Positions 14,245 to 62,734 of a stretch of 64,000 nucleotides of DNA are shown here, piece after piece (position 1 is the first letter of the stretch; every line of letters starts with the position of its first letter). The notes under the pieces are model-generated. The model did not search any database. It was not told the origin of the DNA and worked only from the letters and a program-made list of their open reading frames with translations. This stretch comes from Hemiscyllium ocellatum (Eukaryota). Location: the NCBI RefSeq assembly GCF_020745735.1, contig NW_026867487.1, positions 4,667,239-4,731,238 on the forward strand. Reading direction: 5' to 3'. A program made the translations under genes and the position numbers.

Positions 14245-14752
14245 GAAAGTGAGGACTGCAGATGCTGGAGATCAGAGCTGAAAAATGTGTTGCTGGAAAA
14301 GCGCAGCAGGTCAGGCAGCATCCAAGGAGCAGGAGAATCGACGTTTTGGGCATGAACCCTTCTTCAGGAATGAGGAAAGTGTGTCCAGCAGGCTGAGATA
14401 AAAGGGAGGGAGGAGGGACTTGGGGAGGGGAGTTGGAAATGCGATAGGTGGAAGGAGGTTAAGGTGAGGGTGATAGGCTGGAGTGGGGGTGGGGGCGGAC
14501 AGGTCAGGAAGAAGATTGAAGGTTAGGAAGGCTGTGCTGAGTTTGAGGGATTTGACTGAGACAAGGTGGGGGGAGGGAAAATGAGGAAACTGGAGAAATC
14601 TGAGTCACCCCTTGTGGTTGGAGGGTTCCTAGGCCGAAGATGAGGCACTCTTCCTCCAGCCGTCGTGTTGCTATGGTCTGGCGATGGAGGAATCCAAGGA
14701 CCTGCATGTCCTTGGTGGAGTGGGAGGGGGAGTTGGAAGTGTTGAGCCACGG
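14245..14752 (-). mobile_element. Penelope-like element 3' fragment (end of GIY-YIG region plus terminus)
   Basis: SPSHSTKDMQVLG..RRLEEECLIFGLGTLQPQG matches the end of the element at 25382-27817; hammerhead copy near 14335-14372 has G12 changed to A. Confidence 0.85.
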
Positions 14753-17394: not shown

Positions 17395-17779
17395 ACTATT
17401 TCCCTCGTGACAGATATTGCCAGATCTGTTGGAGCTCTGTAGCTGTTTCTGATTTTATTTCACATTTCTCAATGATTGCATCATCGCACCATTCCGACGC
17501 ACTTTATGATTTAACTTCAATTTTTGTGTGAACACAAAGCAGTCTTTGCAGAGACTCTTGAAAAATTGCTATTGTTGACTTTATTTCAAGTCGGGGGGAG
17601 AAAGTGAGGAGCTGCATCATTCTTGACGAAGAGCTTAAGCTCAAAACATCGACCCTCCTGATCCTTGGATGCTTGGATCTGCTGTGATTGTCCAGTGCCA
17701 CACTTTTGACTTTATTTCAATTGGCCACAGCAGGGTATTGGGTGAAGTTTTCCATAAGCAACAATCATGCCTCGGTTAA

Positions 17780-18730
17780 ACATCTTTTAATTTCAAAAAA
17801 TATAGTTTATTCATAAGACAAATCTCTTTGTGTATATACATTCAACCAAAAAACTGTTCAGTTCTGCACAGTTGCATATCAAGTAAACACAAACAACCTT
17901 CGAGTTTGATCATACACAAAACCAAAAACCTCTCTTGCACAAAGATTACTATTATTTATATATTTTTGACACACTAAGAGAGTCCAATATTTGAATTGAC
18001 CCCCATTTACCTTCAACAGGAAGGCCTCAGACGGTGGTTTTTCCCCACTGTGTCTTGGCAGTAGCTGCCCTAAACTTTGACGTGGACCTCAGCAAGTATT
18101 CCTGGTCATTGGAATATGTCAACCTGCAAAACTCGATTGGATAGGTAAAAACAATGACTGCAGATGCTGGAAACCAGATTTTGGATTGGTGGTGCTGGAA
18201 GAACACAGCAGTCTAGGCAGCATCCAAAATATTTTGGATTGGTGGTGCTGGAAGAACGCAGCAGTTCAGGCAGCATCTGAGGAGCAGCACCGAGGATGCT
18301 GCCTGAACTGCTGTGCTCTTCCAGCACCACCAATCCAAACACTCGATTGGAGTTAGCTCCTTGTTCTGGATGACGAACAAGGCTCGGGCAGATCAAAGAG
18401 TGTCTTTCAATGTTTTTTTTCAATGGTCCTCAAGATGTAGTTGATGCTTGTAAAGGTGTGTTTCCTAGGGAACGGACTGTAGACTACATGGAGCAGCCCA
18501 GGACGAACCTCAACAAAGAGCATTGTATTTTACTTACTTGGCAAGAGCTAATTTCAGCAGGAGGTGTGCGACAGTCTCAACCCCTCAGCAGCTGGTTCAA
18601 GGGCAGTGTCCGGTGATACAGGTGGACCATGGATGCATGGTAGTGCTCCTCTCACCACCAGCCAAGTAATGTCTTCCAACAGGGACTGTATTGAAAATGT
18701 TGTTTCAATTCTGAGGATGGGGCACGGGAC
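17780..18730 (-). mobile_element. Tx1/L1-clade LINE 3' fragment; paralogs at ~37895-38610 and ~57375-58090
   Basis: minus strand encodes GVETVAHLLL and QEYLLRSTSKFRAATAKTQWG, resembling the C-terminus of Tx1-like ORF2 (recognised from memory). Confidence 0.6.
18142..18340. mobile_element. 199-bp Penelope-terminus-derived insertion with an internal hairpin
   Basis: 11-bp direct repeat ACTCGATTGGA at 18131-18141 and 18341-18351; insert absent from the paralog near 38240. Confidence 0.8.
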
Positions 18731-21819: not shown

Positions 21820-22757
21820 TTGTTGGAGTGTCAGAACTTGAGTTCCTCAATTAAGAGTACAGCTCTCTGACGTTTTGAAAACTTGCTTGAGCTGAAGGTC
21901 AGTGTGTATGAAGTATTTGGAGACAGTGATGATATCAATTTTAAAAAAACCTACATCTTCAGTTACTTAAATGGTAGAGTGGAATATTGATTTAGCTGCA
22001 TTTTCTGATAAGATTCATAGCTGTCGACATTCCTTTAATTTTACATTGTTCCATATCTATACCGGATACATTGCTGCACCTAGAGAAAATGGTTCAATGC
22101 CACATTTTCAAGGCTTATTAGTGATGCACGCCAGAAATGCATGCGGCACCCAAATACTATAATTGATTTTTAAAAGAAAGACGTGATGATTCACTTTCTC
22201 TAAAAGTCTGCATGGGAATGGCGAGAGAGCAGAGGTACGCATTAAGACAAATCTTGACAGAAGAGAATGTATTTTGCAAAAGACACAAAGCGAAATGGCA
22301 AGGCAAGCGATGAGGATGGCACAAAGAGTGCAAGGAGGGCATAAAGAGTTTAAGAGAGTGGGACTACCGCTTCCTCTGGCGGGATATCGAAAAGACGTCT
22401 CCTTGCACCACAAGGAAATGAACAACTCAATCAATGGGATGATATCGAATGATTAGCTTGTTGGAATCATTTTTGAGATGACTGGATTGTGTAACTGTTA
22501 ATGAAATGTGAATGATGTTGAAAGAAATTGTTATGTTATTTCTTTCTCTCATTTTTGTATTTCACTGATGTTAGCATATGCGAGTATGCTTGCGATGCCT
22601 TCGCCCACATTTCCATTTCTGTTCACTTCTTCCACTTACGTCTTGCTCGGTTGTATTATCTCTTTTTCTTTGTTACCACATTCCCCTTGACATCGAATTA
22701 TAGAGCCCTGGAATAATAACATTGATACTCAGTACTGCGACCCGCCAACTTGGTATA

Positions 22758-22796
22758 GGCTTTTGTCCAGATTCTTCCTCTGTTTGTAACACTGTG
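22758..22796 (-). other. 23-RSS
   Basis: CACAGTG (22796-22790), 23-bp spacer, ACAAAAGCC (22766-22758). Confidence 0.9.
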
Positions 22797-23133
22797 CCCC
22801 CATTGGCGCAGAGATAGACGGCGGTGTCGTTAGGTCTAGTGTCTCTCACACTTAGGACAGTGTGTTTGTAGTCCGCACTGACTGAAGCAGAGACCCTGTC
22901 CTGTTGATCAGCTTCTCTTTTGGCCAGCACCAGATACTGGGCTGGCTGGTTCGAGAACTGTCAGTACCAATGCACTATGCCAGATGCCGTTGCTATGGCG
23001 CACTCTATGGAAGTGTTTTCTGCCTCCTTAACAACTGTCCACTGAGCAAGTTGCGTGACTTCATCCTCTCCCGTTTCTACCTTGTAGATCAGAGAGGAAA
23101 GCAGAAAAAAAAACTCGGTAAATTTGAGACATC

Positions 23134-23231
23134 TGAAAATGTGTTCCTGGTTAAAGCACAGCAGGTTAGGCAGCATCCAAGGAATAGGAAATTCGACGTT
23201 TCGGGCATAAGCCCTTCATCAGGAATGAGGA
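23134..23231 (-). mobile_element. 98-bp Penelope-terminus mini-insertion
   Basis: 8-bp direct repeat GAGACATC at 23126-23133 and 23232-23239; single copy of this 8-mer in the paralog. Confidence 0.88.
23191..23226 (-). ncRNA. minimal type I hammerhead ribozyme motif (family 1), intact core
   Basis: attc-CTGATGA-a-gggc ttat gccc-GAAA-c-GTC-gaat on the minus strand. Confidence 0.75.
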
Positions 23232-23830
23232 GAGACATCATCAAGTTACATGAAACGTAAGGTCCACCGAGTTCTGTTGGGGAAAAAAAGAGTTAACAAT
23301 GAGAAAAACACTCTTTTCGTGTCGAACACAGTGTTGCCTTCTTTCGAAGTTGTGAAATAAGTTATGTCTTCGAGTTTATCTTTCCGTACCACGCTTTTCG
23401 CACAATGTGTGTAATGGCACTCCGCTCTCTCATTTAATATATGTCAACGATTCAGCCTGCCCTCTAGTGGCTAAGTCTGGAAATTGTTCTCACCAGAATT
23501 GAATTCACACGATCTTGGTCAATGAAAACCAAAATATCAGATTCCTCCTGTCGCCCCCCACCCCCAAAATATCCTTGCCTGGTTTACTCGACACTTTTTA
23601 TTTCAAATGCAGCACCCAACGATTTCAGGGTATTTTCTTCAAACATTGCAACTGAAACTGTATTCCACACTTCCATCAGCCTGACGAAATTAAGCAAAAG
23701 GTCTCAACATTAATCCGAACATTTTGTCCTGTGATTTGAAGCGGCGTGTCACCTCAGCGTGATGTAATGTGACACACACACACACACACACACACTCTCT
23801 CTCTGATGGGGTCTGCCCAAATAAGGGCCC

Positions 23831-23866
23831 ATTCCTGAAGAAGGGCTTATGCCCGAAATGTCGAAT
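23831..23866 (+). ncRNA. minimal hammerhead motif (family 1); paralogs at 43271-43306 and 62757-62792
   Basis: attc-CTGAAGA-a-gggc ttat gccc-GAAA-t-GTC-gaat; the paralogs have a G to T change right after GTC. Confidence 0.65.
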
Positions 23867-24004
23867 CACCTGTTCCTTGGATGCTGCCTGACCTGCTGCG
23901 CTTTTCCAGCAACACATTTTCAGCTCTGCCCAAAACCAGGCAAGTATCTCTGAAATCTCATTCTCTTGGAAGATGCTGTCCATTCATTATGCTGGTGCTT
24001 CAGA

Positions 24005-24900: not shown

Positions 24901-25386
24901 AAGGAAAATATGCTGGCTTGATGTTGAAAATATGACAGTGTCGAAGTTCTCTGCTTGTTGCTGTCCTCTGAATAAGATCATATGGTTCCACCATCTGCTC
25001 TCGAATCGGACATTTCAAAAACCATCACATTCTCTTAAGAAGGCTCAGATTGGGAATTTTTCAAGGGCTACTTTCTAATATTCATGACGTAATAGAACGA
25101 GGGGTTATAGTTTAAACTCATCCATTTTTAAACAGCGATCCAATGTTCTGAGATCAATGATTTGGATGAGAATGTTCTAGGCATGAACGGAAAGTTTGCA
25201 GATGACACTAACATCGGAGGTATGGTGGACAGTGAGGAAGGTCATCAGAAATTGCAGCAGGATCCTGATCAGTTGGGGAACTGGGCCAGAAATGGTAAAT
25301 GGAATTTGGTATGAGGGCTTGCATTGTGGAAAGCTAATTCAAAGCAAGAGTTTGATGATGGATGGTAGTGCCTTAAGGAGGCACTA

Positions 25387-25532
25387 CCCCAAGTCCCTCC
25401 TCCCTACCTTTTATCTTAGCCTGCTGGAAACGCCCCTCCCCCAAGTCCCTCCTCCCTACCTTTTATCTTAGCCTGCTGGAACACCCCTCCCCCAAGTCCC
25501 TCCTCCCTACCTTTTATCTTAGCCTGCTGGAA
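25387..25532 (+). repeat. 51-52-bp tandem repeat (about 3 units) at the Penelope 5' end
   Basis: ccccaagtccctcctccctaccttttatcttagcctgctggaa units starting near 25387, 25439 and 25490. Confidence 0.9.
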
Positions 25533-27685
25533 CCTTCTAACCTGCAATTTTCTTCCTGACCTCTCCTCCCCCACCCCACTCCGGCCTATCAGCCTCAACT
25601 TGACTTCCTTCCACCGATCACATCTCCATCGCCCCTCCCCAATTCCCTCCTCCCTCCTTTTATCTTAGCCAAATGGAATCCACTCCCGGCAGACAAGGGA
25701 GGCGCGGTAGTAGTTTGGCGCAGTGACCTTTATACCTCTGAGGCCAAATGCCAGTTCGCAGACGCCTCCTCCTATTGCCCCCTTGACCATGACCCCACCT
25801 CCCACCACCAAACCATCATCTCCCAGACCATTCATAACCTCATTACGTCAGTGGGTCTCCCATCCATCGCCTCCAACCTCATAGTCCCACAACCCCGCAC
25901 TGCCCGTTTCTACCTCCTGCCCAAAATCCACAAACCTGACTGCCCCGGCCGAGCCATTGTCTCAGCCTGCTCCTGCCCACCAAACTCATCTCTGCGTACC
26001 TCGATATGGTTCTGTCCCCCTTAGTCCAAGAACTGCCCACTTACGTTCGGGACACCACTCATGCCCTCCACCTCCTCCATGATTTTTGCTTCCCCGGTCC
26101 CCAACGCCTTATCTTCACGATGGACATCCAGTCCCTGTAAACCTCCATCCCCCATCACGAAGGACTCAAAGCCCTCCGCTTCTTCCTTTCCCGACGCACC
26201 AACCAGTACCCTTCTACTGACACCCTCCTTCGACTGACTGAACTGGTCCTCACCCTGAACAACTTCTCTTTCCAATCCTCCCACTTCCTCCAAACTAAAG
26301 GAGTTGCCATGGGCACCCGCATGGGCCCCAGCTATGCCTGTCTCTTCGAAGGATATGTGGAACAGTCCATCTTCCACAACTACACTGGCACCACCCCCCA
26401 CCTTTTCCTCCGCTACATCGATGACTGTATCGGCGCTGCCTCGTGCTCCCACGAGGAGGTTGAACAGTTCATCAACTTTACCAACACCTTCCATCCCGAC
26501 CTCAAAATCACCTGGACTGTCTCAGACTCCTCTCTCCCCTTCCTAGACCTTTCCATTTCTATCTCAGGAGACCGAATCAACACAGACATCTACTATAAAC
26601 CGACTGACTCCCACTGCTACCTGGACTACACCTCCTCCCACCCTGCCCCCTGTAAAAACGCCATCCCATATTCCCAATTCCTTCGTCTCCGCCGCATCTG
26701 CTCCCAGGAGGACCAGTTCCAATACCGTCCAGCCCAGATTGCCTCCTTCTTCAAGGACAGCAGATTCTCCCCAGACGTGATCGACGACGCCCTCCACCGC
26801 ATCTCCTCCACTTCCCGCTCCTCCGCCCTTGAGCCCCGCCCCTCCAACCGCCACCAGGACAGAACCCCACTGGTTCTCACCTACCACCCCACCGACCTCC
26901 GTATACAGCGTATCATCCGCCGTAATTTCCACCACCTCCAAACAGACCCCACCACCAGGGATATATTTCCCTCCCCTCCCCTATCAGCGTTCCGCAAAGA
27001 CCACTCCCTTCGTGACTCCCTCGTCAGGTCCACACCCCCCACCAACCCAACCTCCACTCCCGGCACATTCCCCTGCAACTGCAGCAAATGCAAAACTTGT
27101 GCCGACACCTCCTCCGTTACCTCTCTCCAAGGCCCCAAGGGATCCGTCCATATCCGCCACAAGTTCAACGGCACCTCCACACACATCATCTATTGCATCT
27201 GCTGCACCCGATGTGGCCTCCTCTATATTGGGGAGACGGGCCGGCTACTTGCGGAACGCTTCAGGGAACATCTCTGGGATGCCCGGACCAACCAACCCAA
27301 CCACCCTATGGCTCAACACTTTAACTCTCCCTCCCACTCCACCAAGGACATGCAGGTCCTTGGACTCCTCCATCGCCAGAACATAACAACACCATGGTTG
27401 GAGGAAGAGCGCCTCATCTTCCGCCTGGGAACCCTCCAACCACAAGGGATGAACTCAGATTTCTCCAGTTTCCTCATTTTCCCCTCCCCCCACCTTGCCT
27501 CAGTCGATTCCCTCGAACTTAGACCGCCCTCCTAACCTGCAATTTTCTTCCTGACCTCTCCGCCCCCACCCGACTCCGGCCTATCACCCTCACCTTGACC
27601 TCCTTCCAATATCACATCTCCACCGCCCCTCCTCCATGTCCTTCCTCCCTACCTTTTATCTTAGCCTGCTGGACACACTTCCCTC

Positions 27686-27721
27686 ATTCCTGATGAAGGG
27701 TTTTAGCCCGAAACGTCGAAT
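27686..27721 (+). ncRNA. minimal hammerhead motif in the Penelope 3' terminus
   Basis: attc-CTGATGA-a-gggt ttta gccc-GAAA-c-GTC-gaat. Confidence 0.75.
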
Positions 27722-27832
27722 TTCCTGTTCCTTGGATGCTGCCTGACCTGCTGCGCTTTAACCAGCAACACACTTTCAGCTCCGATCTCCAGCATCTGCA
27801 GACCTCACTTTTTACTCCGTGCCTGAAGGAGG

Positions 27833-28545
27833 TTAGTGCAACAGACGCACCTCGGTGTTCAGGTGGACGGTTCTCTGAAACTCACAGTTTGACAGGACAG
27901 CAAAAAAAAAGCTTTTGGCACACAAACCTTCATCAGTCAGTGAATTGAGTATAGAAGTTGTGAAGTTATGTTGTAGTTGTACAGGAGATGATCAGGCCGT
28001 ACTTGGAGTATTGTGCTCAGTATGGTCACCTTGCTATATGAAGGATTTGTTAAAATGGAAAGAGTGCAGAAGAAATTTACAAGCAGCTTGCCTTAACTCA
28101 ATGGTCAATTTAGTAGGAGAGATTGGACAAACTAGGATTTACATCTTTATCGTATAGGAGACTGAGGGAAACGTGGATGGGGGTGTGGATCTTATCAAGG
28201 TGTATAAGACCATGAGAAACATGGACGGTGTGAATGAACTCAATCTTTTTCCCAGGGTTGGGGAATCAAGAACGAGAGGGCATCAGTTTAAGGGGAAAGA
28301 ATAAAAGGGAAGCTCACGGGCAACATTTTTAACACAGATGGTGGTACTCATGTGGAATGACATGCCAGTGGAAGCGGTTGAGGCGGGTACATTCACAACA
28401 TTTAAAGGGATTTAGATAAGTGCATGGATAGGAAAGGATTAGAAGCATACCGGCCAAGTGCAGGAAAATGATGCTAGCATGGACAGACGGCATGGACCAT
28501 TTCAGTCAGAGGACATGTTTCCCTGCTGTAGGACTCTATGACTCC
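27833..28545 (+). mobile_element. 3' part of the CR1 relic interrupted by the Penelope element (5' part ~25090-25381); paralog ~47314-48025
   Basis: continues CR1 ORF2-like sequence across the insertion; tail ctgtaggactctatgactc. Confidence 0.7.
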
Positions 28546-31500
28546 CTCCATTTTTCAATCAGAGACGAGGGAAAAGTTGTCTGTCAGAGCATTGTGAGAT
28601 TTGGGAATGTCCTTCCTCAAAAGGCAGTGATCTTCACTTGAGAGATGTCCCGAACTGATTCTGAATGTCTTCACCGTAACTGAGGGAAGGATGCTTTCAA
28701 AGTAGTTGTCGTACAGAAGGATAATACATTCCAGGCCTGGAGTATCGCTCAAAAACTGACTTTTTGAAGCGTAGTCAGTATATTTAGGAAATCGGGAATC
28801 TAATTTAATTGTTATGGATATTGATGCAAATACAGATTTATTAAAATGAAACAGTGCTGAAGGAATTTGCACGCATGTTGCCTGAACTTAATGGTCTAAT
28901 TTAGAAGGATTTCCATGACAGAAGAAATTTATAGATTTACATTTCCGAATACAACTGCATGAATGGAATCCCTGCACAGCCGTATGACCTGCAGTTCCTG
29001 GAGGTATCCCAAAAGGTCAATAGCGTATCAAAGTTCATAAAATTCCGGATTTACCTGTCCTTTATTCCCAAATTAACAGAGAGTCCGGCCGGGTTTCTGT
29101 ACTTAACATAAATTATTATTCATTATAAATGAATTTATTCCAGATGCAGGTTAAAAATTATGAAAGGATGATATATAATTCAATCGGTTGCAAGTCTTAC
29201 TGCCATGAACAACTACCACCCTGTATTCCTTTAGTGCAGAGAAATCAGGCATCCAGAACTGGGCTGGCATTTTAATGGATCCTGTCTCAGTGTTCGCTGT
29301 GTTGACGCTTCTGGTTGTAGGACTTGTTGCTTCTTAATCTGTTTTCTCCAGGCACATTTGCTGAAGGTGGTACACAATGTTTCACACTGATCACGCCTGT
29401 CACGCACACACTGTATAAGTGTGTGAGCAGATGCTGCTGTACATTTGAAAAATGCAATGCGTTGCTGCCATTCCTCTGACATAATCCCCAACGATTTTTC
29501 CACTCTGCCTGTGCATTGGTGTGTAGCCACCAGGAGAGGGTGGCATTGTGTCACTTTCAGTACAGAGAACCAGGGAGAGCTGCTTTGACCAAACCTAACT
29601 GTCTGGTAGAAGTGATGGTGACCAGCCTTCTTGAATGTCTACACTGCTTGCTGAGTTGGGGCACCTACATTGTTGTTAGCAAGACATTTCCAGGGTCCTG
29701 ACCAAGTCGTGCCGTGTATGGCCTGAGAGTGAAGTGGCCCCATTCATCTACTGTGTTTGTCTTTCTAAGGAGTAGAGGGAATGAGAATGTTCTGTTGTAG
29801 GACAAATTACTGCAATGCAATGTTGCAGCCATAATTCTGCAGCTGTGCATTAGTGATAAGACAGTGAATATTGCTGCTGATGCAGGTGTCAGTCCCGTAT
29901 GTTTTTGTGTTTTTCTGCATTTCATCGACATGAGGAACTTCTGCAGTCCAAATTTATGATTGACCTGATATTCCATGCATCTTCCCTTTACCCCTTTACG
30001 CGGACTTTTAGTCATCCTTTCTTTAATTTTAAATTACTTTGAATCCTTTCACTTCTATGTTTCTTGCGGCCTTGCAAAGCGTACAACATGGGTATTTTCA
30101 ATCTTTCGCTAGCCACAGTTCAATTATTTTCCAACTACATGTTTCTGTTTTCGTGGAACAAATAATAATTACAAACTATATAATACCTCTTCAACCACTC
30201 AGTACTGTCTGTGTACTTCCAAATCATTCTGTGTATTTTGGCAATCCATCATTAGCATTTTCCGACTCCAATTTTCATTGTTTCCATTGTTCAGGTTTCA
30301 GACTCTATTTACAGAATGAATGATGCCACTTTGAAACTTGATTAAAACTTGCACAACATTACTTTCTGTATTCAACAGCACCTATGAAGAGCAAGGTTAT
30401 TACGGCCTGAAGTGTCACCTGAAATAGTAAACTTATGATGGACACTATTGCATTTAACATGGAGTTAGAAAAGATTAACAATGATTAAAGCATCCTGGGA
30501 AATCGAACTCTGCCTTGACTAAAGTGACGATGCTCATCCACATACTGCAGAATCCAGACAGGTTACAGGTGCCCCCAGATGGTTTGCATACAAACCTGAG
30601 AGCTGCAGACCCTGCAACACACACCTGAGGTTGGAGTTGAATGCAACAATGGAATGCCGCCCTCGGGGACAATTTGAAATAGTGAAAGATTCGCTGGAGA
30701 GAGAGGCGCCTGACACCCTTATTTGGAGGAGGTTACGTGCACCCAGCGTTTACCATATTGGATGCCTGAGGGCCAACCTGCCATCAACGTGCCAACACCT
30801 GGTTGGGTCTGATCCTTCAGGGTAATCGAACCTGATTAATCTGTTGGAAGATCCTCAACACCCTCCCAAAAAGGCGTGAAAACTCGGAAGGAGAGCAGTC
30901 AACACAAAATCACACCCAGGATGGTAACTCGAGAATAACCACCGAAGGAGAAGACACCGTCAAGACATCGGAAGTGAAGGGAGGCATCATTACATGGAGC
31001 CTGGTCAAGTTTGAATGTGGTGGTACACGAATGTACAAAGTTAAATTAAATCATAAGATATGTCGTTGTTCTTTTTTTGATGGTTTATGGTTCTCATATT
31101 AATTGTGTCCAATAAACGAAAATCATTTTCTGTTAGAGTCGACTCACGGTTCTTTTGCTGTATCGAAGAACTTTAACACACTGTGTGGCAGGTACAACAT
31201 TATGAATTTTTCTCCGTCTTTAACCAATGTTAAACCTAAAACAAGCTGATTTTGATTTGGTCCTTTAACGGTTTGCTTCAGAAAAGTTCATAACAAACTC
31301 CAGAAATTCATCTCCCACAGATTTCGTCAATGGATTTACAGCTAGGATAGGTAATTGAATCACTTGCCACAATCCTCCCATATTCATGGTTCCTCCTTGA
31401 CAACGTTATCTTTGTGTCTGCTCAGGAGGTGATTGATTGAATCCATGACTGCACATTAGTTGAGCATAGTGTCTCCTTGCTGTGAATGTTTGTCAAACTT

Positions 31501-31684
31501 CTTGATGAGTTTAAATTCCTTTCTCAGTAAGGCTGTGATTGCATTCATAATATGAAACACAATTTTGGATGCTGGAGATCTGAAACACATAGATGGTTGT
31601 GTTTGTGATTTGTTCCTCACTGAAAATAAAGTGTCAGATATAAGTTTCCAGTTTGAAAATGGCACTTCATAATTAGAGTAATAA

Positions 31685-32190
31685 TCATAGAGTCAGAGAG
31701 GAGTACTGCATGAAAACAGACCCTTCGGTCCAACCCGTCCAAGTTATCCAGATATCCCAATTTAGTTCCACTTGCCAGCAACCGGCCCAGATCCCTCTAA
31801 ACCCTTACTATTCATCTACCCATCCAAATGCCTCTTAAATGTTGTAAATGTACTAGCCTCCACCGCTTCTTCTGGCAGCTCATTCATACACGGAACACCC
31901 TCTGCGTGTAAAAGTTGCCCCGTAGGTCTCTTTTATATTTTTCCCCCCTCACCCTAAACCTATGCCCTGTGGTTCTGGACTCCCACACCGCAGGGAAATG
32001 ACTTTGTCTATTTACCCTATCCATGTCCCCCATAATTTTATAAACCTCTATCATGTCACCCCTCAGCCTCTGACGCTCGAGGGAAAACAGCCCCAGCCTT
32101 TTGGTCTCTCCCTATAACTCAAATCCTCGAACCCTGGCAACATTCCTGTAAATCTTTGCTGAACCATTTCACGTTTCACAACATTCTCCC
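31685..32190 (-). mobile_element. CR1 3' end; paralog 51165-51670
   Basis: reverse complement of the CR1 3' ORF2 and tail seen elsewhere in the window. Confidence 0.75.
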
Positions 32191-32864
32191 AACAGTTGTA
32201 CCTGTTTGTATTACCGTCCTGATTTATGGGCAAAAACACATTTGAAAGCAGTTAGGTGAACTCTGTTATAAAATTGCAGGTGGAAGTGCAAGTGAAATGC
32301 ATCTGTGGAGTTCTTCAATAATGATAATAGTTTGAATACTAGATAAAGAAGGGCATGCATTGTGTCCAAGAATTTCCTTTTGTCGTGATATGTGTACCTA
32401 CACACTGACCTTTGAGATATGCTCATTCCTTCTCATGAATTAAAATGAACTGAAATGCATTAGCTGAAATAAAGACCAATACACCTTCAATGGGAACTTT
32501 CAAAATAAAACGGGAAGTATGTTTGGAAAGCAAAACTTCGGAGAAAGATTACAAAAGCAGGTGGAGAACACCTTTTAGTATTTTAGCTATGTTATTATTC
32601 CAGAGAGTCAGTTAATGTCCTGGGAAACAGGATACGAGTCCCTCCAAAGTAGATGGTGAAATTTGATATGCATAAAATTAAATATCTGAAATTAAGAGTC
32701 TAACAATGACCATGGCAACATTGTCGATTGATTGACGTGATTCAATAATGGACTTCCGGAAATCCTCTGTCCTGTCCTGGTCTGGCCCATATGCGACGAC
32801 AGACCCACAACACGAGTGTAACAAGCTACTCTATTGATAGATATCAGAGAGTTCCTGCAGTGTG

Positions 32865-33165
32865 AAAACGGGCCATTACAAGTCCACACCTCCCACCGAA
32901 GAGTTACCCACCCAGAGTCAACCAATAAATCCGCATCTCCCCTGATGAACCCTATCTACACATCCCTGAGCACTATGTACAGTTTTAGCATGACCAATTC
33001 ACCTAGCCTGCACATATTTGGATATTGGGGGAAACCAGAGCACTTGGAAGAAATCCACGCAAACACGAGGGAATGTGCAAACTCCATTCAGACAAGGCTC
33101 GAATCGAATGTCGGTCCCTGGTGCTGCGAGGCAGCAGTGCGAACCACTGAGCCACCGTGCCGTCC
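32865..33165 (-). mobile_element. diverged V-SINE-like SINE; paralog 52345-52645
   Basis: gaggcagcagtgcgaaccactgagccacc head and aaaccagagcacttggaagaaatccacgc core on the reverse strand. Confidence 0.7.
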
Positions 33166-34236
33166 ACGTCTAACAATCTTCTTGAATTATCATCAAAGGT
33201 ATGATCCACATGGCGTCAGAAAAATAAATAACTGCAGAAAAAGTAATGTGGACTCTGCAAAGTTGTCCTTACGAACATCTGGGAAGTCGTGCCAAAGTCG
33301 GAGAGCTGTCTTACAGACGAGTCAAGCAACAGCCTGACAAACTCAGAACAATAGATTCATATCTGATAGACAACATCTAAGACACAACGGCCACCATCCC
33401 TGTGTATGTCCCATCCCACCGGCAGGATAGATTGAGCTGAGGTAGCCAGGCCATTGCATGCAGTCAGGAGGGAGTTGCCCTCACAATCATCGGCATTGTC
33501 TCCAGACATTATGACGTTCCATGGCTTAAGGTTATTTATGCCCAAGTATTCTCCTGCTGATTAAAGCATACTGCATTACCTTGAGTGATAAATGACTCCA
33601 TATTGTTTGTTTGTTTGTGTGTGTGCGTGTGTGTGTGTGTGTCACTCTTCTTATGGTTGCATCAAATTGCTTTGCGGAAGCAGTTCTCAAGGGCGAATGA
33701 CGTCATTCTGTTGCAATTCATCATGTCCTCTGTAAGTAACGTAATCAATTTTCACTGCTAAAACTTCCAGATCTGATGCAAAACTGTCTTTGAAAACTGA
33801 TGTCATCTGAATCTGATTGGTGGGGTTTTTGATGCAGTGAAAATTTTAAACTGCATGGGACGAAAATTGTTTCTGTTTGAAGTCAGCAAACTGCCAAAAC
33901 ACAATGAGCCCCACTAGCACCACAACCCAGATTCGAGGTCGATAACTGCTTGTCATTTCCTCGCTCAACTTCACTGTGGACATTGGCTGCGCAGATTGAT
34001 TGAGACCCGAGTAATAAAACAATTTTGCAATTTTTCACCTTTCATCTCACCTACAGAGAAAAATCTACCTCTATGAAGAGTACCCGATCGATTGCTGCTG
34101 AAAATATAGTGTAATGGTGGAAGACGATATAACGTCTGCAAGTATGAGAGAAAAGCAACAGGTTGAGCAAGACAGCCAGGGAAGAGATTGTAGAGAGTCA
34201 GCTCTATTTGGTCCTGTCTTAACTGTGATTGGTGCA

Positions 34237-34248
34237 ATGTTGACGTCA
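34237..34248 (+). promoter_or_regulatory. CRE-containing motif ATGTTGACGTCA in a V promoter; paralog 53717-53728
   Basis: TGACGTCA about 150 bp upstream of the leader ATG, with reverse CCAAT (attgg) just 5' of it. Confidence 0.55.
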
Positions 34249-34398
34249 GATATGAGAAACCACCCAGTTGGATCAAGGGAACAAATGTCTCACTTGTCCG
34301 GAAAGTGAAGGTTGTTTCTGATCGGGTTTCAGCCCCGCATGTAAGATCGGAAGGTCAAAATATTTTGAAAAATACGTTGTTTACTGCCGAACCTGAAA

Positions 34399-34833
34399 AT
34401 GTGCTTTTTATGTGCTTTACTGATAATTATGACAGTGGTGTCAGGTAAGTTCGACCTAAAATCATCAATATGCGCTTCACCAGTTCGATCTTCACATTTT
34501 TTACAACTTCATTATTTCTGTTGCAGGTTCGAGTGGCCAAGATTCAGTTTCCCAGCATCCACTTGAAAAAACGGTTCAGGAAGGAGAGACTGTAATCTTC
34601 AACTGTAATTACACAGCACAGATCACTGCTCCAGTGCTCTTTTGGTACATCCAATATCCCGGGGAAGCTCCGGGATATTTACTGAGTAGATTCAACAAGG
34701 ATGAAGGACAGACGTCTCCAGCTTTCTCTGACAGGTTCTCTTCTACTCTGGACAAAAAGCAGAAAATGTTTCCTTTAAATATCACTGTTGCTCTTGTATC
34801 TGACTCTGCCGTCTACCACTGTGCGCTGAGTCT
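34399..34833 (+). CDS. TRAV: TCR alpha V segment, family a, copy B (leader 34399-34444, V exon 34527-34833)
   Basis: MCFLCALLIIMTVVS, donor gtaagt, acceptor ttgcag; QDSVSQ..FNCNY..WYIQYPGEAP..DSAVYHCALS. Confidence 0.92.
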
Positions 34834-34872
34834 CACGCTGATAAAGAGTTGCATTCAGTCCATACAGAAACT
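34834..34872 (+). other. 23-RSS
   Basis: CACGCTG, 23-bp spacer, ACAGAAACT. Confidence 0.8.
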
Positions 34873-35129
34873 ATCCAGACGCACTCATGAGCCTCCTTTC
34901 CCTACTTGTACCCTAAGCCACATTTCTGATGTGTCGCTGAATTGTCAACTGACAAGATATTGGAAACCAAACGAAAAACATCTGTAATCCAAAGATAACT
35001 CTGCCTGCATTTCACATTGTGCGTTTTTCTACATAAAACCTTCTTATATCGCTGTGCCCGCCGATGGCACGCAGTAATAGAAGAAGCAGAGGGCCATTTA
35101 ACCCAACGAGCCCGCTTTGCCAATCATTA

Positions 35130-35450
35130 AGATCTATCCATTGTCTCGGCTCTTCTGACCTGCATTATCCCCATAACCCTTATTTTCCCAAATATGCAAA
35201 AACTCATTCAAATGTGTCTTGAATAAATTTAATGAAGCTGCCTCCTCTACTTCCTTTGGCATGGAATTCCACTGTCTCTGGGAAAAGCAGTTTCTCCTTT
35301 ACTCAATCCTAAACCCACTTGCCCTAATATTGAGGCCACCGCCTCCAAAACCAGTAAATCTTTCCTCAAGTAAGGAGATCAGAACTGCGCACAATACTCC
35401 GGGTGCGGCCTCACCAACACATTGTACTGTTACAGCAGAACCTCCATGCT
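35130..35450 (-). mobile_element. degenerate CR1 3' fragment; paralog 54610-54930
   Basis: similarity to other CR1 3' ends. Confidence 0.55.
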
Positions 35451-35732
35451 CTTAAATGCAATCAGCATTAAATATTAAGCACTAGTGAGCAGGGCTGACT
35501 TTGTTAAAGGGGAGAATTGAAGTTAGTGCTGCTGTCAGGTTTATTCAGTGATCAGCAAGCCCTGGCGTGGAGTATATTTTGGGTCGACATTGATAGATTA
35601 ATGAATCAACAGGGACAGATGTGAATTGAGTAGTCTGCCAGAAGTTGGAAATGATGTGGATCATATTGTTCGCTAGTGGAGCAGGTTGAACGGAACAAAC
35701 AGCCTCCTTTATTTCGCACCGGACGTCCCGTG

Positions 35733-35750
35733 GTCAACATGTTGACGTCA
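35733..35750 (+). promoter_or_regulatory. palindrome GTCAACATGTTGAC overlapping CRE TGACGTCA in a V promoter; paralog 55213-55230
   Basis: about 150 bp upstream of the leader ATG at 35897. Confidence 0.55.
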
Positions 35751-35896
35751 TTGACTGGAGATCAAAGCAGCTGTTAGCCGATATGGTGATTCCGAACCAT
35801 TCAGCAGCGAGACCGGATATGACACACTATTGACTGCCAGCTGAAAAGAATCAGCTTCAATTTTCTTTGTTCCCACTCACCATCTGCTCTGCAAAT

Positions 35897-36398
35897 ATGT
35901 CGACTGTTATTATTTATTCATTTCTCACTACTACAATGTTCTTAAAAGGCAAGTCTCTGAGTTGTAATTTATTCTCTTGTGTTAAAATATCTATAGCAAT
36001 TTTCGATTTATTTGTGTTCCCTCGATTACAGTATATGCGTTGACTCGGTAACATTCATAGTGAGCGTCACTTTATTTTTATATTTGCACAGGTGTTAATT
36101 GTGCCGATTCGATCTCACAGAAGCCGGCTACAGTGAGACAATTTGAAAGAGATTCAGTCACCATTCGTTTCAGATATTCGACCACAGATAGCATGCATAC
36201 TTTGCAACTGTACCGTCAGGACCCAGGGAAGTCTCCAATATTCTTAATCTACGTTGACAACTTTGGCAGTATTAACAGAGGAGAGGGGGTGTCCGATCGA
36301 TTTTCTGCATCTTTGGACAAGTCAAAAAATGAGGGGAATTTCACCATCTATGAACTGCAGGTGTCTGACAGCGCAGTATATTACTGTGGACTGAGACA
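35897..36398 (+). CDS. TCR alpha/delta V segment, family b, copy B; open frame but lacks Cys23 and Trp41 (leader 35897-35948, V exon 36092-36398)
   Basis: MSTVIIYSFLTTTMFLK with GC donor gcaagt; DSISQKP..VTIRFRY..LQLYRQDPGKSP..DSAVYYCGLR. Confidence 0.85.
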
Positions 36399-36437
36399 CA
36401 CAGTGACAGGAACCAGGCTGAGCCTCGTGCAAAAACA
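36399..36437 (+). other. 23-RSS
   Basis: CACAGTG, 23-bp spacer, GCAAAAACA. Confidence 0.9.
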
Positions 36438-37735
36438 CTGCCAAAATGGAACCAAGAGCTAAATGTGGCTAGTCAAGTCGAGAGTAACATTTACTTCCTA
36501 CCGTAATGCCTGAATGAACCAAGTTCAAATTTAAAAAATATATTTCACACCGAAAGGTCAATGGGTGCTGACTCCGAGAGGGATCTGTGTTCTCACTCTA
36601 TGTTTAATACAAGTGAATAAGATGCAAACATACGATTAAAGAATTGATGACATTGGGCAAATGAAAGTGATTGCCATAGAATTACTGTTAGAAACATCTG
36701 GCATTGTGCTCCAGCCATTGAAGGGGGTGCACAACAGAAATCATGAATCATCAGCTTCAGAACTCCCTGCGACACTGAATTAAGTGACAACAGAAACTTG
36801 ACTTCGAGCAATGCGATGTGATGCGTTCAATATCCAAAAGCAAATCTGTCATTCTTCCTGATATACTTCAATTTAGCGTTTGCCCTCGGTCTGATTTTGA
36901 TCATCCATTAGCTATTCCATGTATCTGCAGCTTATGATTCCTCTGTGATTGATTATTGTTGTACTGATGTTTGCTCATTAGCTTCCTGTCTTGATAACAA
37001 TGTCATGGCGCCATCTAATGATGTAGATGCTTGATACTAATGCATGTAAATGTCTTTAACACTGAGAAAACTCTGATCAGTTTACTACAATTGTTTTGAC
37101 TTTCTCTAGACAGGCTTCAGTGACCATTGTAAATTGATATTTCACGTCACATCCATTTGTTCCTCTGAATGTAATATTTCTGGAACGTTTGATCTGGGAT
37201 ATATTTCGTTCGAAGTTGGAGTTAGACATGAAAGAGCAAAATGCAACCATTTCAGAAGCGGACAGTTCAGAGTTGTGAGAGGAAGAATAAAATTGAGATT
37301 GTCAATGTCACGCCTCTGGCCTTCAATTTGCACCTGCATAGTGAAGGTTGGGAGATCAGATTATACGGAACCAATTTTCGCAAATGCACCTCAGTAGCCT
37401 GGAGAACATGGCGTTAACGGTGTGTTCTCTCAACCATTATGACAAAAGCTGTGAACAAAACGTTCTGAAGAGGAATCATATCAGACTCGAAAAGTTAACA
37501 TAGTTTCACTCTTGACAGATATTGCCAGATCTGTTGAAGTTCTGTAGCTGTTTCTGATGTTATTGCATATTTGTCACCAATTACATCACCGTAATATTCC
37601 TTTGCAATGTTATCATTTTGTGATTTAACTTCATTTTGTTGGGGAGGGGGGAATGAAAAGCAGTCTTTGCAAAGATCTTCAAAATTGCTATGAGTGACTT
37701 TACTTCATGTCGGGGGAGATAGTGAGGACTGCATT

Positions 37736-37771
37736 ATTCCTGATGAAGAGCTTAAGATCGAAACGTTGACC
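37736..37771 (+). ncRNA. degenerate hammerhead motif with GAGC-type stem II; paralogs near 17620-17652 and 57216-57251
   Basis: attc-CTGATGA-a-gagc ttaa gatc-GAAA-c-GTT-ga; the 17.6-kb copy has a perfect gagc/gctc stem but a mutated core. Confidence 0.45.
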
Positions 37772-39780
37772 CTCCAGATCTGTCTGACTTGTTGTGCGTC
37801 TCCAGTGGCACACATTTGACTTTATTTCACGTCGCCACAGCAGGGTGTTGGGTGAAGTTTTCAATAAGCGATAATCACACTTCAATTGAACTTCTTTTAA
37901 TTTCAAAAATATAGTTTACTCATAAAACAATATTTTCATGTATATACCTTGAACTAAAAACTGTTCCATTCTACACAGTTGCTTATCAAGTAAACACACA
38001 GAACGTTCGAGTTTGACTAAATACAAACCAAAGACCTCTCCTGCACATACAACGCTGCTATTTACATATATTTGTCACACTAGGAAAGTCCGATAATTGA
38101 ATGTACCCTCATTTGCCTTCAGCATGATGACCTCAGTCTATGGTCTTTCCCAACTGTGTCTTGGCAGTAGCTGCCCCAATTTTTCATGTGGACTTCAGCA
38201 TGTAGTCCTGATCATAAGAATATCTCAATGTGCAAAATCAGATCGAGGTCAACTCGTTATTCTGGAAGATGAACAAGGCTCAGCAGACCAAGTAGTGTCT
38301 TTCAATGCTTTGATGGTCCTCAAGGTGCAATTGATGCCTGAAATGGCGTGTGTCTGAGGGAAAAGACCATAGCGCACATGAAGCTGCTCAGGACGAGCAT
38401 CAACAAAATTATTGCATTTTACTCCAGACCTACTTGGCAAAGGCAAATTCGAGAAGGAGATGTGTGACAATCTCAAACCCTCGGCAGCCAGTTCAAGGGT
38501 GTTTGTGGTGACACAGGCGGACCATGCATTTATGGTAGAGCCTTTCCCACCACCAGCCAAACGATGTCTTCAAATAGGGGTTGTATTGATAATGTTGTTT
38601 CAAATCTGAGGAAAGGGCACGGGACACAAAACGTAAACTTTAATTTCTCTTCACTGATGCCACCAGACGTTTTCCAGAAACCCCCGTTTTTGTATCAGTA
38701 TCAGTCCATTAGTTTCATGACCCAAAGGGAAAATCTCTGCAATCAGGGATAAGTGTCCAGGCAGTTAAATAAACAGAATCCCAGCGGAGTCATATATCCA
38801 AGACTAAACAAAATCGATTCGAAAATTCCGAATGTTTGGATTACAATACCACCTGTAACTTTCTCTCAACCTAAGTCACCAATTTACAGAGAACAGTATA
38901 TATATTATTTCACAGCCACTGTGTCAAAATTCTGGATCTCCCTTGCTAACAGCACTGTGAGTTTCCTTCCATCTCAAAGAGCTCAGCAGTCCAAGAGGCA
39001 GATCACCTCCACCTTCTCCAATGCAATTTGTGGTCGTAATAGTATTCGGTTTCACTTAAATGTCGCCAGAGGCAGGACAGGATCCTCTCGTCTTTACACC
39101 ATTGACATAATCAGGTAAGAACGATTGAGATCAATCAACAAATTGAGGTGTCCGTTGAAGAATGTTCATTTCCAGACAGCCCAGCAAGCAGAAACCACAT
39201 GCGAATAAGACTTCCACTAATCACGTTGCCTCATTAATCTGCCATTATTGAGTGTGTTTGTTTGATTAGTGTTGTTCAGATTGGAGCTATATCCCACTTG
39301 CTGGTTGGTATTTGAAAGCAAGGCTGCGTTATCCTGGACCAACGAATCTGTCTCTCGCTATTTTGAAACGGTTAACATGCAGCTGCAGAGGCAGGACCTC
39401 AATACAGCACAAAATGTTTGATGTTATTCAGGTTGCTCCGGCGGTGCACGTGGCCGATCAAAATCACGTGACCGATTATGGTTTCCCTCACCAAATGCTT
39501 TGGATTTTGTTGGACGTAACTCGTTGCAGCATTTTCGCTATATCTCATTGCAGTAAACGTGGAACGCTTTGGGACATTTCAAAAGGCATGGACTCATGCA
39601 TTCACTTTTCATTCACTAAACTGACAGCTTTTGTTTATTTCAATAATATATTTATAACGAATAAAGTCATGTATTCAAGTGAAAAAGTATCAGATTTTAC
39701 GCGAATTCGGGTACAATTTCAGATCCACTCTTGATCTCACCGTTTGCCTGACACACTGTCATGTTCAGTGACTCCCTGAC

Positions 39781-39819
39781 AGTTTTTGTACAGTGTCGGC
39801 CCTGTTCTGACTCTCCGTG
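39781..39819 (-). other. 23-RSS
   Basis: CACGGAG, 23-bp spacer, ACAAAAACT. Confidence 0.82.
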
Positions 39820-40884
39820 GGGCGCAGTGCGCAGTAATACACTGCAGAGTCTGCCAGTTCTGTTTTCACCACTTTCAGGTTGATGGTGCAGTTCACATGA
39901 TCGAGCTTTGAGGACAACCGGTCCCCTTGAAACCTTTCTGCGTTCGCTCCAAATTTGCTTCTCTGTAGCAGAATCTCCATGGAACCATTGGAATGTTGGA
40001 GGTACCAGAAAAGGTAAGGAGTGCTGCTTGTTGTCGTATAATTACAGAACAACTGGACATTGTCCTCCTCATTCACTGCAATTGAAGCCGGTGTCTGTGA
40101 GACAGAATCTCCTCGGCAAAGTCCTGCAAAAATCGATTGATCAATTTACTTGATTGATTTGTCACGTGTACCTCAGTGCACTGGAAAGCTTTCTTTACCA
40201 GCGGTATCGGCAGATCATAGAAAAGAAGGATGTACAGATAATAGAATGAGAAGAACAAATTTAGACAGAGGCAGACAGGTTACGTTTAAAAGGTCAACAT
40301 TAGCAGGATCAGCACTTTAAGTTAGAGACTCTCGGAGAATCCGAAAATTACAGAAAATATTTCATTTTTCTGTTGCCGCAATCACCCCCTGACCTTGAAC
40401 AATAACCTGCGAAATAAGTTCGGGAAAGAACAAAAATTAATTACATGCAACTCGGCAGCTATATTGGTAAAGGGATTTGACAGATTAAATAAAACCTCCT
40501 TCAGTACACGGGTCACACCGCCTAACAAGGTCATTTTCCATTTCGTTCCCGATCCTGAAGGGAAAACTGCAGATGGTATGTTAATTTATAACTCTCGCCT
40601 CTGTCAATGTATCTGAACAGACCCCGTCCTTCTTAATTCCCAGCCTAAGTCTTCAACAGTCTTTCAATTGGGTCGTTTGCTAACTCATACCAAATAGTGC
40701 AGGTGTTGGATAAATTTGGTTATATTGATTTGGAGACAATGTATCACTTCTTCTACTTTGATGGAACTGTTGGGGTTAATGTAATTGTCGCTGTGGATAT
40801 GAAAGAAAAAGATCATCAACTTATCAACCTACCAGTTAGAACAGCTGCAGCTGTGAGGAATAAACACAATGCTCCAGGCGTCAT
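39820..40884 (-). CDS. TRAV: TCR alpha/delta V segment, family c, copy B (leader 40884-40833, V exon 40123-39820)
   Basis: MTPGALCLFLTAAAVLT, donor gtaggt, acceptor tttgcag; LFCNY..WYLQ..DSAVYYCALRP. Confidence 0.9.
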
Positions 40885-42282
40885 TGTTACCGAGAGATCA
40901 CAGCGAATGTGAGCAGATCGAAGCTAAAGTAATTTTCGTCAAGAATTGCTAACATTTCCGGATCTCTGCCCATTGGTTCATTGTTGACAAAGGCATGAGG
41001 TGACAACCAATGATTGTCAAACGCCTTTGTTCATTAATTCACACAATCAGCTTCACGCGCTTTGAACTTCATTTCATATGGCCACAAGAGAAAGGAACAC
41101 CGTGAATTTATGAGCCAGACGACGGGGTCTTGCATACACTTTGAACCAACATTGATATTTGGCAGTTTTAGGTTCTCTGCAGGCGAAGTCAGAGAAGGAA
41201 CACAGTCCACGTTGTTCGAGTGTCAGAAGCAGGAATTCTGCAGATCAGCGAACAGCTCTCTGGCATTTTGAGATCTTCCATTCACCAGGCTGAGAGACAG
41301 TGTGTTAGAGTTTTTTGGACACAGTGACGATGTCCATTAAAAAAAGTGCATATTCAATTTCTTAAATACTTGAGTGGAATGTCGATTTTGCTGCATTTTC
41401 TGGTAAGATTCATAGCAATCGACATTTCTTTAATTTTACATTGTGCCATCACAAATGTATCAACGGTATCTACACCGGGTTCATTACAGCAAAAAGACAA
41501 AATGGTTCACTGCCGCATTTCCAACGTGCATTAGTGATGCATACAAGAGTTGCATGCAACACCCAAATACTGTAATATTTTTTGAAGGAACACATGATGA
41601 CAGAGTTACTCTGAAAGTCTGAATGGGAATGGTGAGAGAGCAGCGGTACACATTAATAGAAATCCTGACAGAAGAGAATGTATTTTGTCAAAGACGCAAA
41701 CGTAAATGGCAAGGCAAGCGGTGAGGATGGCACAAAGTGTCTGCGATAAGGACACAACGAATTCAAGTGAGTGGGACTACAGTTTCCACTGGAACAGGTA
41801 TCTGGGAACGTTGCACCTCAAGGAAATGAACAGTTGAGTCGACGGGATGATGCAGAATGATTAGCTTATTCGAATCATTTTTGAGAGAACTGGAATGTGT
41901 AAGTGTTAATGAAATGTGAATGATGTTAAAAGAAAGGCCATATTACTTTCCTTCAAGGTTAATTTATGACTTAAACTGATGTAATATTTAACGTCTATGC
42001 ATGACACTCGTTATTTTTCCCTTTTATCTTTCAATAGTTTATCATCATTTCATCTTCTACATGTATTGTTACTTTATTTCCGCTCTTTCTCTCATCTTTT
42101 ATTTCACTGATGTTAGCATATGTGAATGTGCTTGCTTTATCTCCACCCAGACTTCCAATTCTCTTCACTTCGTGCACTCTTCCTGCTCGGTTGTTCTACC
42201 GCTTTTTCTGTTGCCGTGGTCCCCTTAACATCGAATTATACAGCCCTGAAATAATTGCATTGATGCTCAGCAGCGTGGCATA

Positions 42283-42321
42283 GGTTTTTGTTCAGACTCT
42301 CCCTCTGCTTGTAACACTGTG
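42283..42321 (-). other. perfect consensus 23-RSS
   Basis: CACAGTG, 23-bp spacer, ACAAAAACC. Confidence 0.95.
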
Positions 42322-42659
42322 CCCTCACTGGCACAGAGATAGATGGCGGTGTCGTTAAGTCTGGTGTCTCGCACACTCAGGACACTGAGTTTGTAATCTG
42401 TCCTGACTGAAGCGGAGATCCTCTCATGTTGATCAGCTTCTCTTTTGGCCATCACCAGATGCTGGGGCGGCTGGTTCGGGAGCTGTCTGTACCAATGCAC
42501 TGTGCGAAATGTCGTTGTTGTGGAGCACTCTATGGAAGCGTTTTCTGCCTCCTTAACAACTGTCCACTGAGCAAGTTGCGTGACTTCATCCTCTGCCGTT
42601 TTTACCTTGTAGATCAGAGAGGAAAGCAGGAAAAGAACTCGGTAAATTTGAGACATCAT
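42322..42659 (-). CDS. TRAV: TCR V segment, family d, copy B; leader and V in one uninterrupted frame
   Basis: MMSQIYRVLFLLSSLIYKVKTA-EDEVTQ..IEC..WYRQLPNQPP..DTAIYLCASE; 112 codons plus GG, then RSS. Confidence 0.88.
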
Positions 42660-43206
42660 CAAGTTACATGAAGTGTAAGGTCCACCGAGTTCTGTTGGGA
42701 AAAAAAAAGATTTGACAATGAGAAAAACACTCTTTTCGTGTCGAACACAGTGTTGCCTTCTTTCGAAGTTGTGAAATAATTTATGTCTTCGAGTTTATCT
42801 TTCCATACCAGGCTTTTCGCACAATGTGTGTATGGCACTCCGCTCTCTCATTTAATATATGTCAACGATTCAGCCTGCCCTCTAGTGGCTAAGTCTGGAA
42901 ATTGTGACGTAAATGTTCTCACCAGAATGGAATTCACACGATCTTGTTCAATGAAAACCAAAATATCTGATTCCTCCTGCCGCCCCACACCCCCCCACCC
43001 CCAAATATCCTTGCCTGGTTTACTCGGCACTTTTTATTTCAAATGCAGCACCCAACGATTTCAGGGTATTTTCTTCACGCATTGCAACTGCAACTGTATT
43101 CCAGACTTCAATCAGCCTGCCTAAATTAAGCAAAAGACCTCAACATTAATCGGAACATTTTGTCCTGTGCTTTGAGGCGGCATGTCACCTCAGCGTGATG
43201 GAATGT

Positions 43207-43248
<42 letters not shown>

Positions 43249-44821: not shown

Positions 44822-45018
44822 CCCCAAGTCCCTCCTCCCTACCTTTTATCTTAGCCTGCTGGAACGCCCCTCCCCCAAGTCCCTCCTCCCTACCTTTTAT
44901 CTTAGCCTGCTGGAAACGCCCCTCCCCCAAGTCCCTCCTCCCTACCTTTTATCTTAGCCTGCTGGAACGCTCCTCCCCCAAGTCCCTCCTCCCTACCATT
45001 TATCTTAGCCTGTTGGAA
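44822..45018 (+). repeat. 51-52-bp tandem repeat (about 4 units) at the Penelope 5' end
   Basis: same unit as 25387-25532 with one more copy. Confidence 0.9.
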
Positions 45019-47166: not shown

Positions 47167-47202
47167 ATTCCTGATGAAGGGCTTTAGCCCGAAACGTCGA
47201 AT
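47167..47202 (+). ncRNA. minimal hammerhead motif with intact core in the Penelope 3' terminus
   Basis: attc-CTGATGA-a-gggc ttta gccc-GAAA-c-GTC-gaat. Confidence 0.78.

Positions 47203-62686: not shown

Positions 62687-62731
<45 letters not shown>
62687..62731. repeat. (CA)n microsatellite; shorter paralogs at ~43207-43245 and ~23771-23795
   Basis: pure CA run, 6 nt longer than in copy B. Confidence 0.9.

Positions 62732-62734
<3 letters not shown>

Follow-up and report, generated by a model that had tools for sequence, protein, structure and literature searches.

The window analysed here, a 64,000-nucleotide stretch of the Hemiscyllium ocellatum genome, consists over its whole length (1-64000) of three tandem units of approximately 19.5 kb, each with a single V gene (A, B and C). 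Units 2 and 3 (25384-44512 and 44870-64000) are 99.1% identical, whereas unit 1, home to pseudogene A, has diverged far more (78-95%). Pseudogene A occupies 22758-23133 on the minus strand, with leader and V exon fused, no leader intron and a 23-spacer RSS, the heptamer CACAGTG lying at 22796-22790 and the nonamer ACAAAAGCC at 22766-22758 on the same strand with a 23-nt spacer between them. Paralog B (42300-42665, minus strand) is intact, has an uninterrupted insertion site and translates to an intact 120-aa leader-plus-V product; paralog C (~61780-62145) is 99% identical to B. The leader and V exon form one continuous frame without a leader intron in 42300-42665 and 61780-62145 also, and the same fusion is present at L001:10001-10429, L002:3001-3351 and L003:3001-3393 of the bamboo shark Chiloscyllium punctatum, and is conserved across both shark species.

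The product of B matched the Pfam V-set model at 6.5e-09. Most of the best solved-structure matches of the V were TCR alpha chains, although the top two were antibody diabody constructs, and by this comparison the V gene is TCR-alpha-like. The closest database relatives of B were three V-set genes of C. punctatum with 83-84% identity, and the polarity of changes was read from an alignment of six loci comprising A, B, C and the DNA of three C. punctatum genes (L001-L003). Relationships among these loci (22740-23480 against 42260-42900 and L001-L003) are mosaic: the upstream, promoter side of A groups with B, from which it has diverged by approximately 5% upstream, and the 3' half of the A V exon groups with one C. 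punctatum gene. This pattern suggests gene conversion among the V paralogs. Private changes in A are distributed unevenly, with 0 in 210 bp of the upstream region and 16 in 336 bp of the V exon.

An insert of 98 bp (23134-23231, minus strand) lies at the start codon of V copy A in the sense orientation of the V. Alignment of A with B gave a gap of 106 columns, made up of the 98-bp insert and one extra copy of GATGTCTC. This target-site duplication of 8 bp is perfect (8/8 identical) and contains the ATG; its upstream copy was placed at 23232-23239 and its downstream copy at 23126-23133 (both minus strand), the latter carrying the retained authentic ATG at 23132-23130. The upstream copy, together with the A/T at 23241-23240, keeps the tandem ATGATG start, with ATGs at 23241 and 23238. 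The 98 extra bases and the ATG-containing 8-bp duplication described in the first-pass annotation were both recovered in the A/B alignment and in a BLAST search of the insert against the window. The AAATTT flank of the insertion site is AT-rich, as reported for other PLEs (Penelope-like elements); a target preference of the endonuclease was considered and set aside, as one site proves nothing.

The insert is missing from paralogs B and C and from the three C. punctatum V genes in the six-locus alignment, and a single uninterrupted GAT(G/A)TCTC is found in all five relatives of A. The insertion took place in copy A only, after A had separated from B and C. The same footprint would be left if the 106 bp were ancestral and had been deleted precisely between the 8-bp repeats elsewhere, and B and C count as only one lineage in this respect. 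Such a history would nevertheless require several identical, precise deletions, as the three C. punctatum genes, which are separate loci, also do not carry the insert. An assembly artefact would be at odds with clean junctions and a perfect duplication, which are unlike misassembly, and under either alternative the insert would not be expected to be what it is, a dispersed repeat whose end matches that of other independent copies. The chance that the gap stems from ancestral deletion or misassembly is regarded as negligible.

BLAST of the insert against the window yielded six more full-length matches. Two of these, at 47162-47260 and in its paralog at 27682-27779, close a long reading frame with a GIY-YIG motif, and the insert shares 93.9% identity with the copy at 47162-47260, itself located behind a PLE RT/GIY-YIG reading frame. 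The long copy (44817-47298, plus strand) comprises frameshifted RT pieces, a 476-aa ORF with the GIY-YIG motif and the module at 47162-47260, and has a tail of approximately 37 bp and a 15-bp flanking duplication AGTGCCTTAAGGAGG; its paralogous long copy ends at approximately 27817. The Pfam GIY-YIG model scored 22.6 bits, at the cut-off, in the paralogous copy and 16.7 bits in the long copy itself, and the nearest protein atlas neighbours of the 476-aa frame (0.97) were eukaryotic clusters with HTH_animal, GIY-YIG and RVT_1. Pfam RVT_1 was undetected in the broken RT pieces upstream of this frame, which contain motifs that we take to be those of a PLE reverse transcriptase. The family combines a reverse transcriptase with a C-terminal GIY-YIG endonuclease, and the identification of the insert as a Penelope terminus in V sense orientation, made at first from the letters alone, is upheld by the link to this frame and by the copy ends described below.

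Shorter members of the family were also found. A 5'-truncated copy with a tail, 505 bp in length and with a G12-to-A change in its hammerhead, lies at 14246-14750 on the minus strand. A tail-less mini-insert of 103 bp (23822-23924, plus strand) is flanked by a 10-bp duplication TCTGCCCAAA at 23812-23821 and 23925-23934, and is common to all three V units, being located at 43270-43363 and 62756-62849 in B and C. C. punctatum L001 represents an empty site for this mini-insert which, given its duplication and the empty site, is a second, independent insertion of the family. Duplications thus measure 8 bp (V copy A), 10 bp (23822-23924) and 15 bp (44817-47298), and copy lengths of 98, 103 and 505 bp and approximately 2.5 kb indicate 5' truncation to different extents. 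Taken together, these observations support the reading of the 98-bp insert as a genuine insertion of a PLE terminus with target-site duplication.

Further structures of the family were observed in the window and at the C. punctatum locus. The 103-bp mini-insert (23812-23934, 43252-43377 and 62738-62863) adjoins a (CA)n tract and has 8 extra 5' bases, TAAGGGCC. The complex PLE insertion at 44802-47313 (paralog ~25368-27835), bounded by the 15-bp duplication AGTGCCTTAAGGAGG, begins on its 5' side with four to five tandem units of approximately 52 bp, followed by the truncated RT/GIY-YIG body; the units are partial copies of the stretch directly upstream of the hammerhead, each ending near GCCTGCTGGAA. 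At 47100-47227 and at L001:843-1322, and hence in both species, the PLE frame reads right across the hammerhead and meets its stop codon immediately beyond, in GCTGCCTGA, which reflects either an element ORF that overlaps the ribozyme or low-complexity read-through. Tandem and inverted blocks resembling PLE ends (GGCAGCATCC... facing GGATGCTGCC...) form a hairpin-like arrangement at 18140-18340. In C. punctatum, a tail-less fragment at L001:701-861 (minus strand) and a tail-bearing fragment at L001:1196-1394 (plus strand) are inverted PLE ends approximately 330 bp apart, an arrangement that has been described for PLEs. A second hammerhead-bearing family with a different, imperfectly paired helix II is present at 37736-37769, 57216-57249 and 17617-17673 (CTGATGAAGAGCTTAAGATCGAAACGTT and a decayed relative).

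The ends of eight copies, six of them independent and two of those from the C. punctatum locus, were aligned. Three independent copies (V copy A, 23822-23924 and L001:701-861) are tail-less and end at CATTTTCAG(C); another three (47162-47298, the copy at 14246 and L001:1196-1394) bear a tail and extend approximately 37 bp further. An optional "tail" of 30-40 bp is known from PLE copies (PMC8557442), and two adjacent internal start sites of reverse transcription, both downstream of the hammerhead, have been shown biochemically for an Anolis PLE (PMC11167929). The shark copy ends match both the published tail and the two start sites. The insert in V copy A is thus a tail-less, strongly 5'-truncated copy, comprising little besides the hammerhead and the first-copied piece. 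A fixed 5' end of an approximately 100-bp unit was also considered, the two mini-inserts starting at most 7 nt apart, just before helix I; two such cases are indistinguishable from chance 5' truncation.

Within the insert a minimal type-I hammerhead was located at 23191-23226 on the minus strand by motif match, with features as described in PMC4209133. Helix I (AUUC/GAAU) is formed by 23226-23223 with 23194-23191, and is followed by the core CUGAUGA (CTGATGA in the DNA) at 23222-23216, an unpaired A at 23215 and helix II at 23214-23203 (GGGC-UUAU-GCCC, four GGGC/GCCC base pairs). GAAA at 23202-23199 leads into the palindrome ACGU at 23199-23196, C17 at 23195 and G1.1 at 23194, so that the predicted cut, between 23195 and 23194, precedes the retained ATG at 23132 by 62 nt. 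Helix III amounts to 1 bp with a palindromic 2-nt loop (A-CG-U ahead of C17). Both the intact core on the V strand and the position of the cut, put at about 60 nt 5' of the downstream ATG in the first-pass annotation, agree with the strict motif scan, in which all core boxes were present.

The strict motif pattern occurred 8 times in the window, where shuffles led one to expect 0.01 occurrences. Rfam hammerhead models gave no match over the window at the gathering score, nor at 23000-23400 with E-values of up to 10. All eight copies keep helix II fully paired (100%), and the extra base ahead of GGGC is A in seven of them and U in one. A covariation count over these closely similar copies gave 93.8% of cells paired, a figure equalled by shuffles, with changes from G-C to G-U only; compensatory changes were absent among the eight, which are few and too similar. 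Given the lack of compensatory change, the ribozyme call rests on the motif match and the family context. The core in V copy A is fully intact, whereas other copies carry G12A, a C-to-U change at 15.2 or G1.1-to-U, and its hammerhead is among the best kept of the eight compared. As far as can be judged from sequence, the insert holds a predicted PLE minimal hammerhead with all published features.

Two further lesions were identified in A. A leader T9 run at 23105-23113 (minus strand) is one base longer than in all five relatives, each of which has TTCTTTTCC; A differs from this by two C-to-T changes and one extra T, which takes the downstream frame out of register with the ATG at 23132. In FR2, a TGA at 22961-22963 (minus strand; W-Y-stop-Q) stands where all five relatives have AGA, as read in the W-Y-R-Q motif of B. 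The FR2 stop and the 1-nt leader shift, both listed in the earlier annotation, are confirmed by these alignments with B and the five relatives. As none of the five relatives possesses the insert, the longer run or the TGA, all three lesions are derived in A. Each of the two, the extra T and the FR2 TGA, is an inactivating lesion in its own right.

The effect of the insertion on translation was assessed from a map of every ATG. The original ATGATG (23241, 23238) now opens an out-of-frame ORF of 50 codons that spans the insert and terminates at 23089, extending past and overlapping the retained ATG at 23132. The ATG supplied by the insert at 23176 opens an ORF of 71 codons (22961-23176, minus strand) that ends at the FR2 TGA, as had been claimed; it is in the V frame solely owing to the extra T in the leader, and is preceded by ATGs at 23219 and 23208. 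Under ordinary ribosome scanning, the upstream ATGs and the overlapping out-of-frame ORF would be expected to prevent translation of the V leader. Since an ORF overlaps the retained ATG and two further ATGs are present, the insertion alone should abolish V leader translation and, by itself, inactivate the gene.

A sequence of events can be given in outline: the 103-bp mini-insertion was followed by the split of the A and B lineages and this in turn by the three lesions in A, with the recent duplication of B and C separate from these. The order of the lesions within A is less readily obtained. Over its 98 bp the insert departs from the nearest subfamily copies at 4 private positions; dating by these private substitutions failed, as they may have been inherited from the source copy, and the disparity between 0 changes in 210 bp upstream and 16 in 336 bp of V exon provides no single neutral rate. 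Point and slippage mutations are generally commoner than insertions into a given 100-bp target. This would be in keeping with an insert that landed, as a neutral passenger without causal role, in a V gene already dead through the stop or the frameshift, as would the 16 private changes in the A V exon. Exonic insertions are moreover rare and selected against, with 0.24-0.32% of such elements being exonic in Xenopus (bioRxiv 10.64898/2026.07.22.740005), and survival would be easier in a pseudogene. Against this, V genes are redundant and a knock-out insertion into a live copy would be tolerated too, and the absence of private changes from 210 bp upstream and the identical duplication copies do not point to a long period of neutral decay; as the first-pass annotation also cautioned, a single sequence does not put the events in order. 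On balance, insertion into a gene that was already dead is held to be marginally favoured, and it is rather doubtful that the insertion preceded both the extra T and the FR2 TGA.

The remaining alternative, advanced in the first-pass annotation, assigns the first loss of function to the ribozyme. The hammerhead would cut V transcripts approximately 60 nt before the ATG, removing the cap and silencing the gene, with the stop and frameshift following later. From its position at the ATG, the insert would be part of the mRNA; none of its core nucleotides is altered on the V sense strand, the state of its hammerhead ranks among the best in the set of eight, and protein-assisted cleavage has been published for a PLE hammerhead (PMC11167929). 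A helix III of 1 bp with a 2-nt loop means, however, that a single copy cannot form the active fold. Single minimal hammerheads of PLEs showed no detectable cleavage and dimers cleaved only at a low level (PMC4209133), and the Anolis PLE hammerhead, which is dispensable for insertion, cleaves only with the PLE protein (PMC11167929). No sense-strand partner hammerhead is found near V copy A, the nearest other copy (23822-23924) being oppositely oriented and located 5' of the V. In nearest-neighbour folding, which cannot judge ribozymes stabilised by tertiary contacts, the active-like monomer had -9.0 against an MFE of -11.7, and the MFE structure sequesters core and cut site by pairing the core GAUG with CGUC at the cut site; for the dimer, a double hammerhead with intermolecular ACGU/ACGU pairing had -16.9 against -26.2 for the dimer MFE.

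Silencing by self-cleavage is not supported, in view of the 1-bp helix III, the published inactivity of single copies and the lack of a sense-strand partner nearby; the insertion alone, without any cleavage, already disrupts the translation start. Ribozyme-driven silencing is considered unlikely; that it came first, ahead of the other lesions, is improbable and is the least supported part of the earlier reading. Some activity in vivo could occur, for example with a PLE protein aiding cleavage in trans. A more elaborate proposal is that mini-elements act as conditional switches, the hammerhead being silent alone and cleaving the host mRNA when PLE protein, or plentiful PLE RNA that pairs with it, is supplied. 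If so, PLE bursts would knock down genes with sense-strand 5' copies, and the ribozyme would have been what cost the shark this V gene; this proposal is highly improbable.

The explanation that best accommodates the data overall, and which is put forward with good though not complete confidence, is that a PLE copied a short part of itself into V gene A, with the hammerhead as a passenger. The PLE reverse transcriptase/GIY-YIG machinery left the 8-bp target-site duplication, and the new DNA consists only of the terminal 98 nt of the element, made up of the minimal hammerhead and a piece of approximately 60 nt reaching to the tail-less terminus. Of the two known PLE start sites, reverse transcription would have used the upstream one; this would account for the missing tail of the copy in A. 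The hammerhead, as a single copy with a helix III of 1 bp, would be expected to cleave little or not at all. The mosaic orthology between A and the C. punctatum genes counts against this explanation.

So understood, the locus records a clean, datable strike of a PLE mini-element on a coding exon, for which an uninterrupted paralog and insert-free outgroup genes are at hand. The loss of a single V copy is to be expected where the family is redundant, and an exonic hit there is unsurprising. The shark family also displays the two alternative copy ends found biochemically in a lizard element, and V copy A could serve as a natural test of cleavage in vivo by solitary minimal hammerheads.

The predicted hammerhead is closest in its features to the minimal hammerheads of PLEs, which are mostly solitary truncated copies (Cervera & de la Pena 2014, PMC4209133). 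It shares with these the CUGANGA and GAAA boxes, an unpaired base between A9 and G10.1, the G10.1-C11.1 pair, a 4-bp helix I, its location in the PLE terminal region and a palindromic ACGU in place of a real helix III. It differs in having no Rfam model match and in the length of helix II, which is 4 bp in the shark as opposed to 6-8 bp in the minimal hammerheads of Schistosoma and Drosophila.

In the geometry of its ends, the shark family resembles the Anolis element (Frangieh et al. 2024, PMC11167929; Craig et al. 2021, PMC8557442), with a hammerhead followed some tens of nucleotides on by the copy end. Copies of the shark family stop at either of two points, each beyond the hammerhead cut site and separated by approximately 37 bp, with V copy A taking the inner one. 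In the shark, where the element is known from sequence, 61 nt separate the cut site from the inner end, compared with approximately 85-92 nt in Anolis.

Non-LTR retrozymes and PLE hammerhead monomers (bioRxiv 10.64898/2026.07.22.740005; PMC5680766) likewise present a short non-coding hammerhead unit from the PLE terminal region, with dispersed monomers that are rare in exons. Unlike a retrozyme, the shark insert is a lone monomer with its own duplication, showing no tandem array and no evidence of circular RNA, and within the same window its unit forms an unbroken stretch with the 3' end of an autonomous PLE. Being a single unit between unique V-gene flanks, it is at most a monomer derivative of a non-LTR retrozyme.

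The discontinuous hammerhead in the CLEC2 3' UTR of mammals offers a parallel of another kind, in that it too lies inside a cellular mRNA and could lower expression by cleavage in cis. The shark hammerhead differs in having no helix III, in its position at the 5' end and in its occurrence in a gene that is otherwise broken too. The CLEC2 3' UTR hammerhead studied by Martick and colleagues in 2008 is reported to possess stable helices and to be active as one unit. Set beside these systems, the insert in V copy A is a fresh instance of a known, locally abundant element type and no new kind of system.
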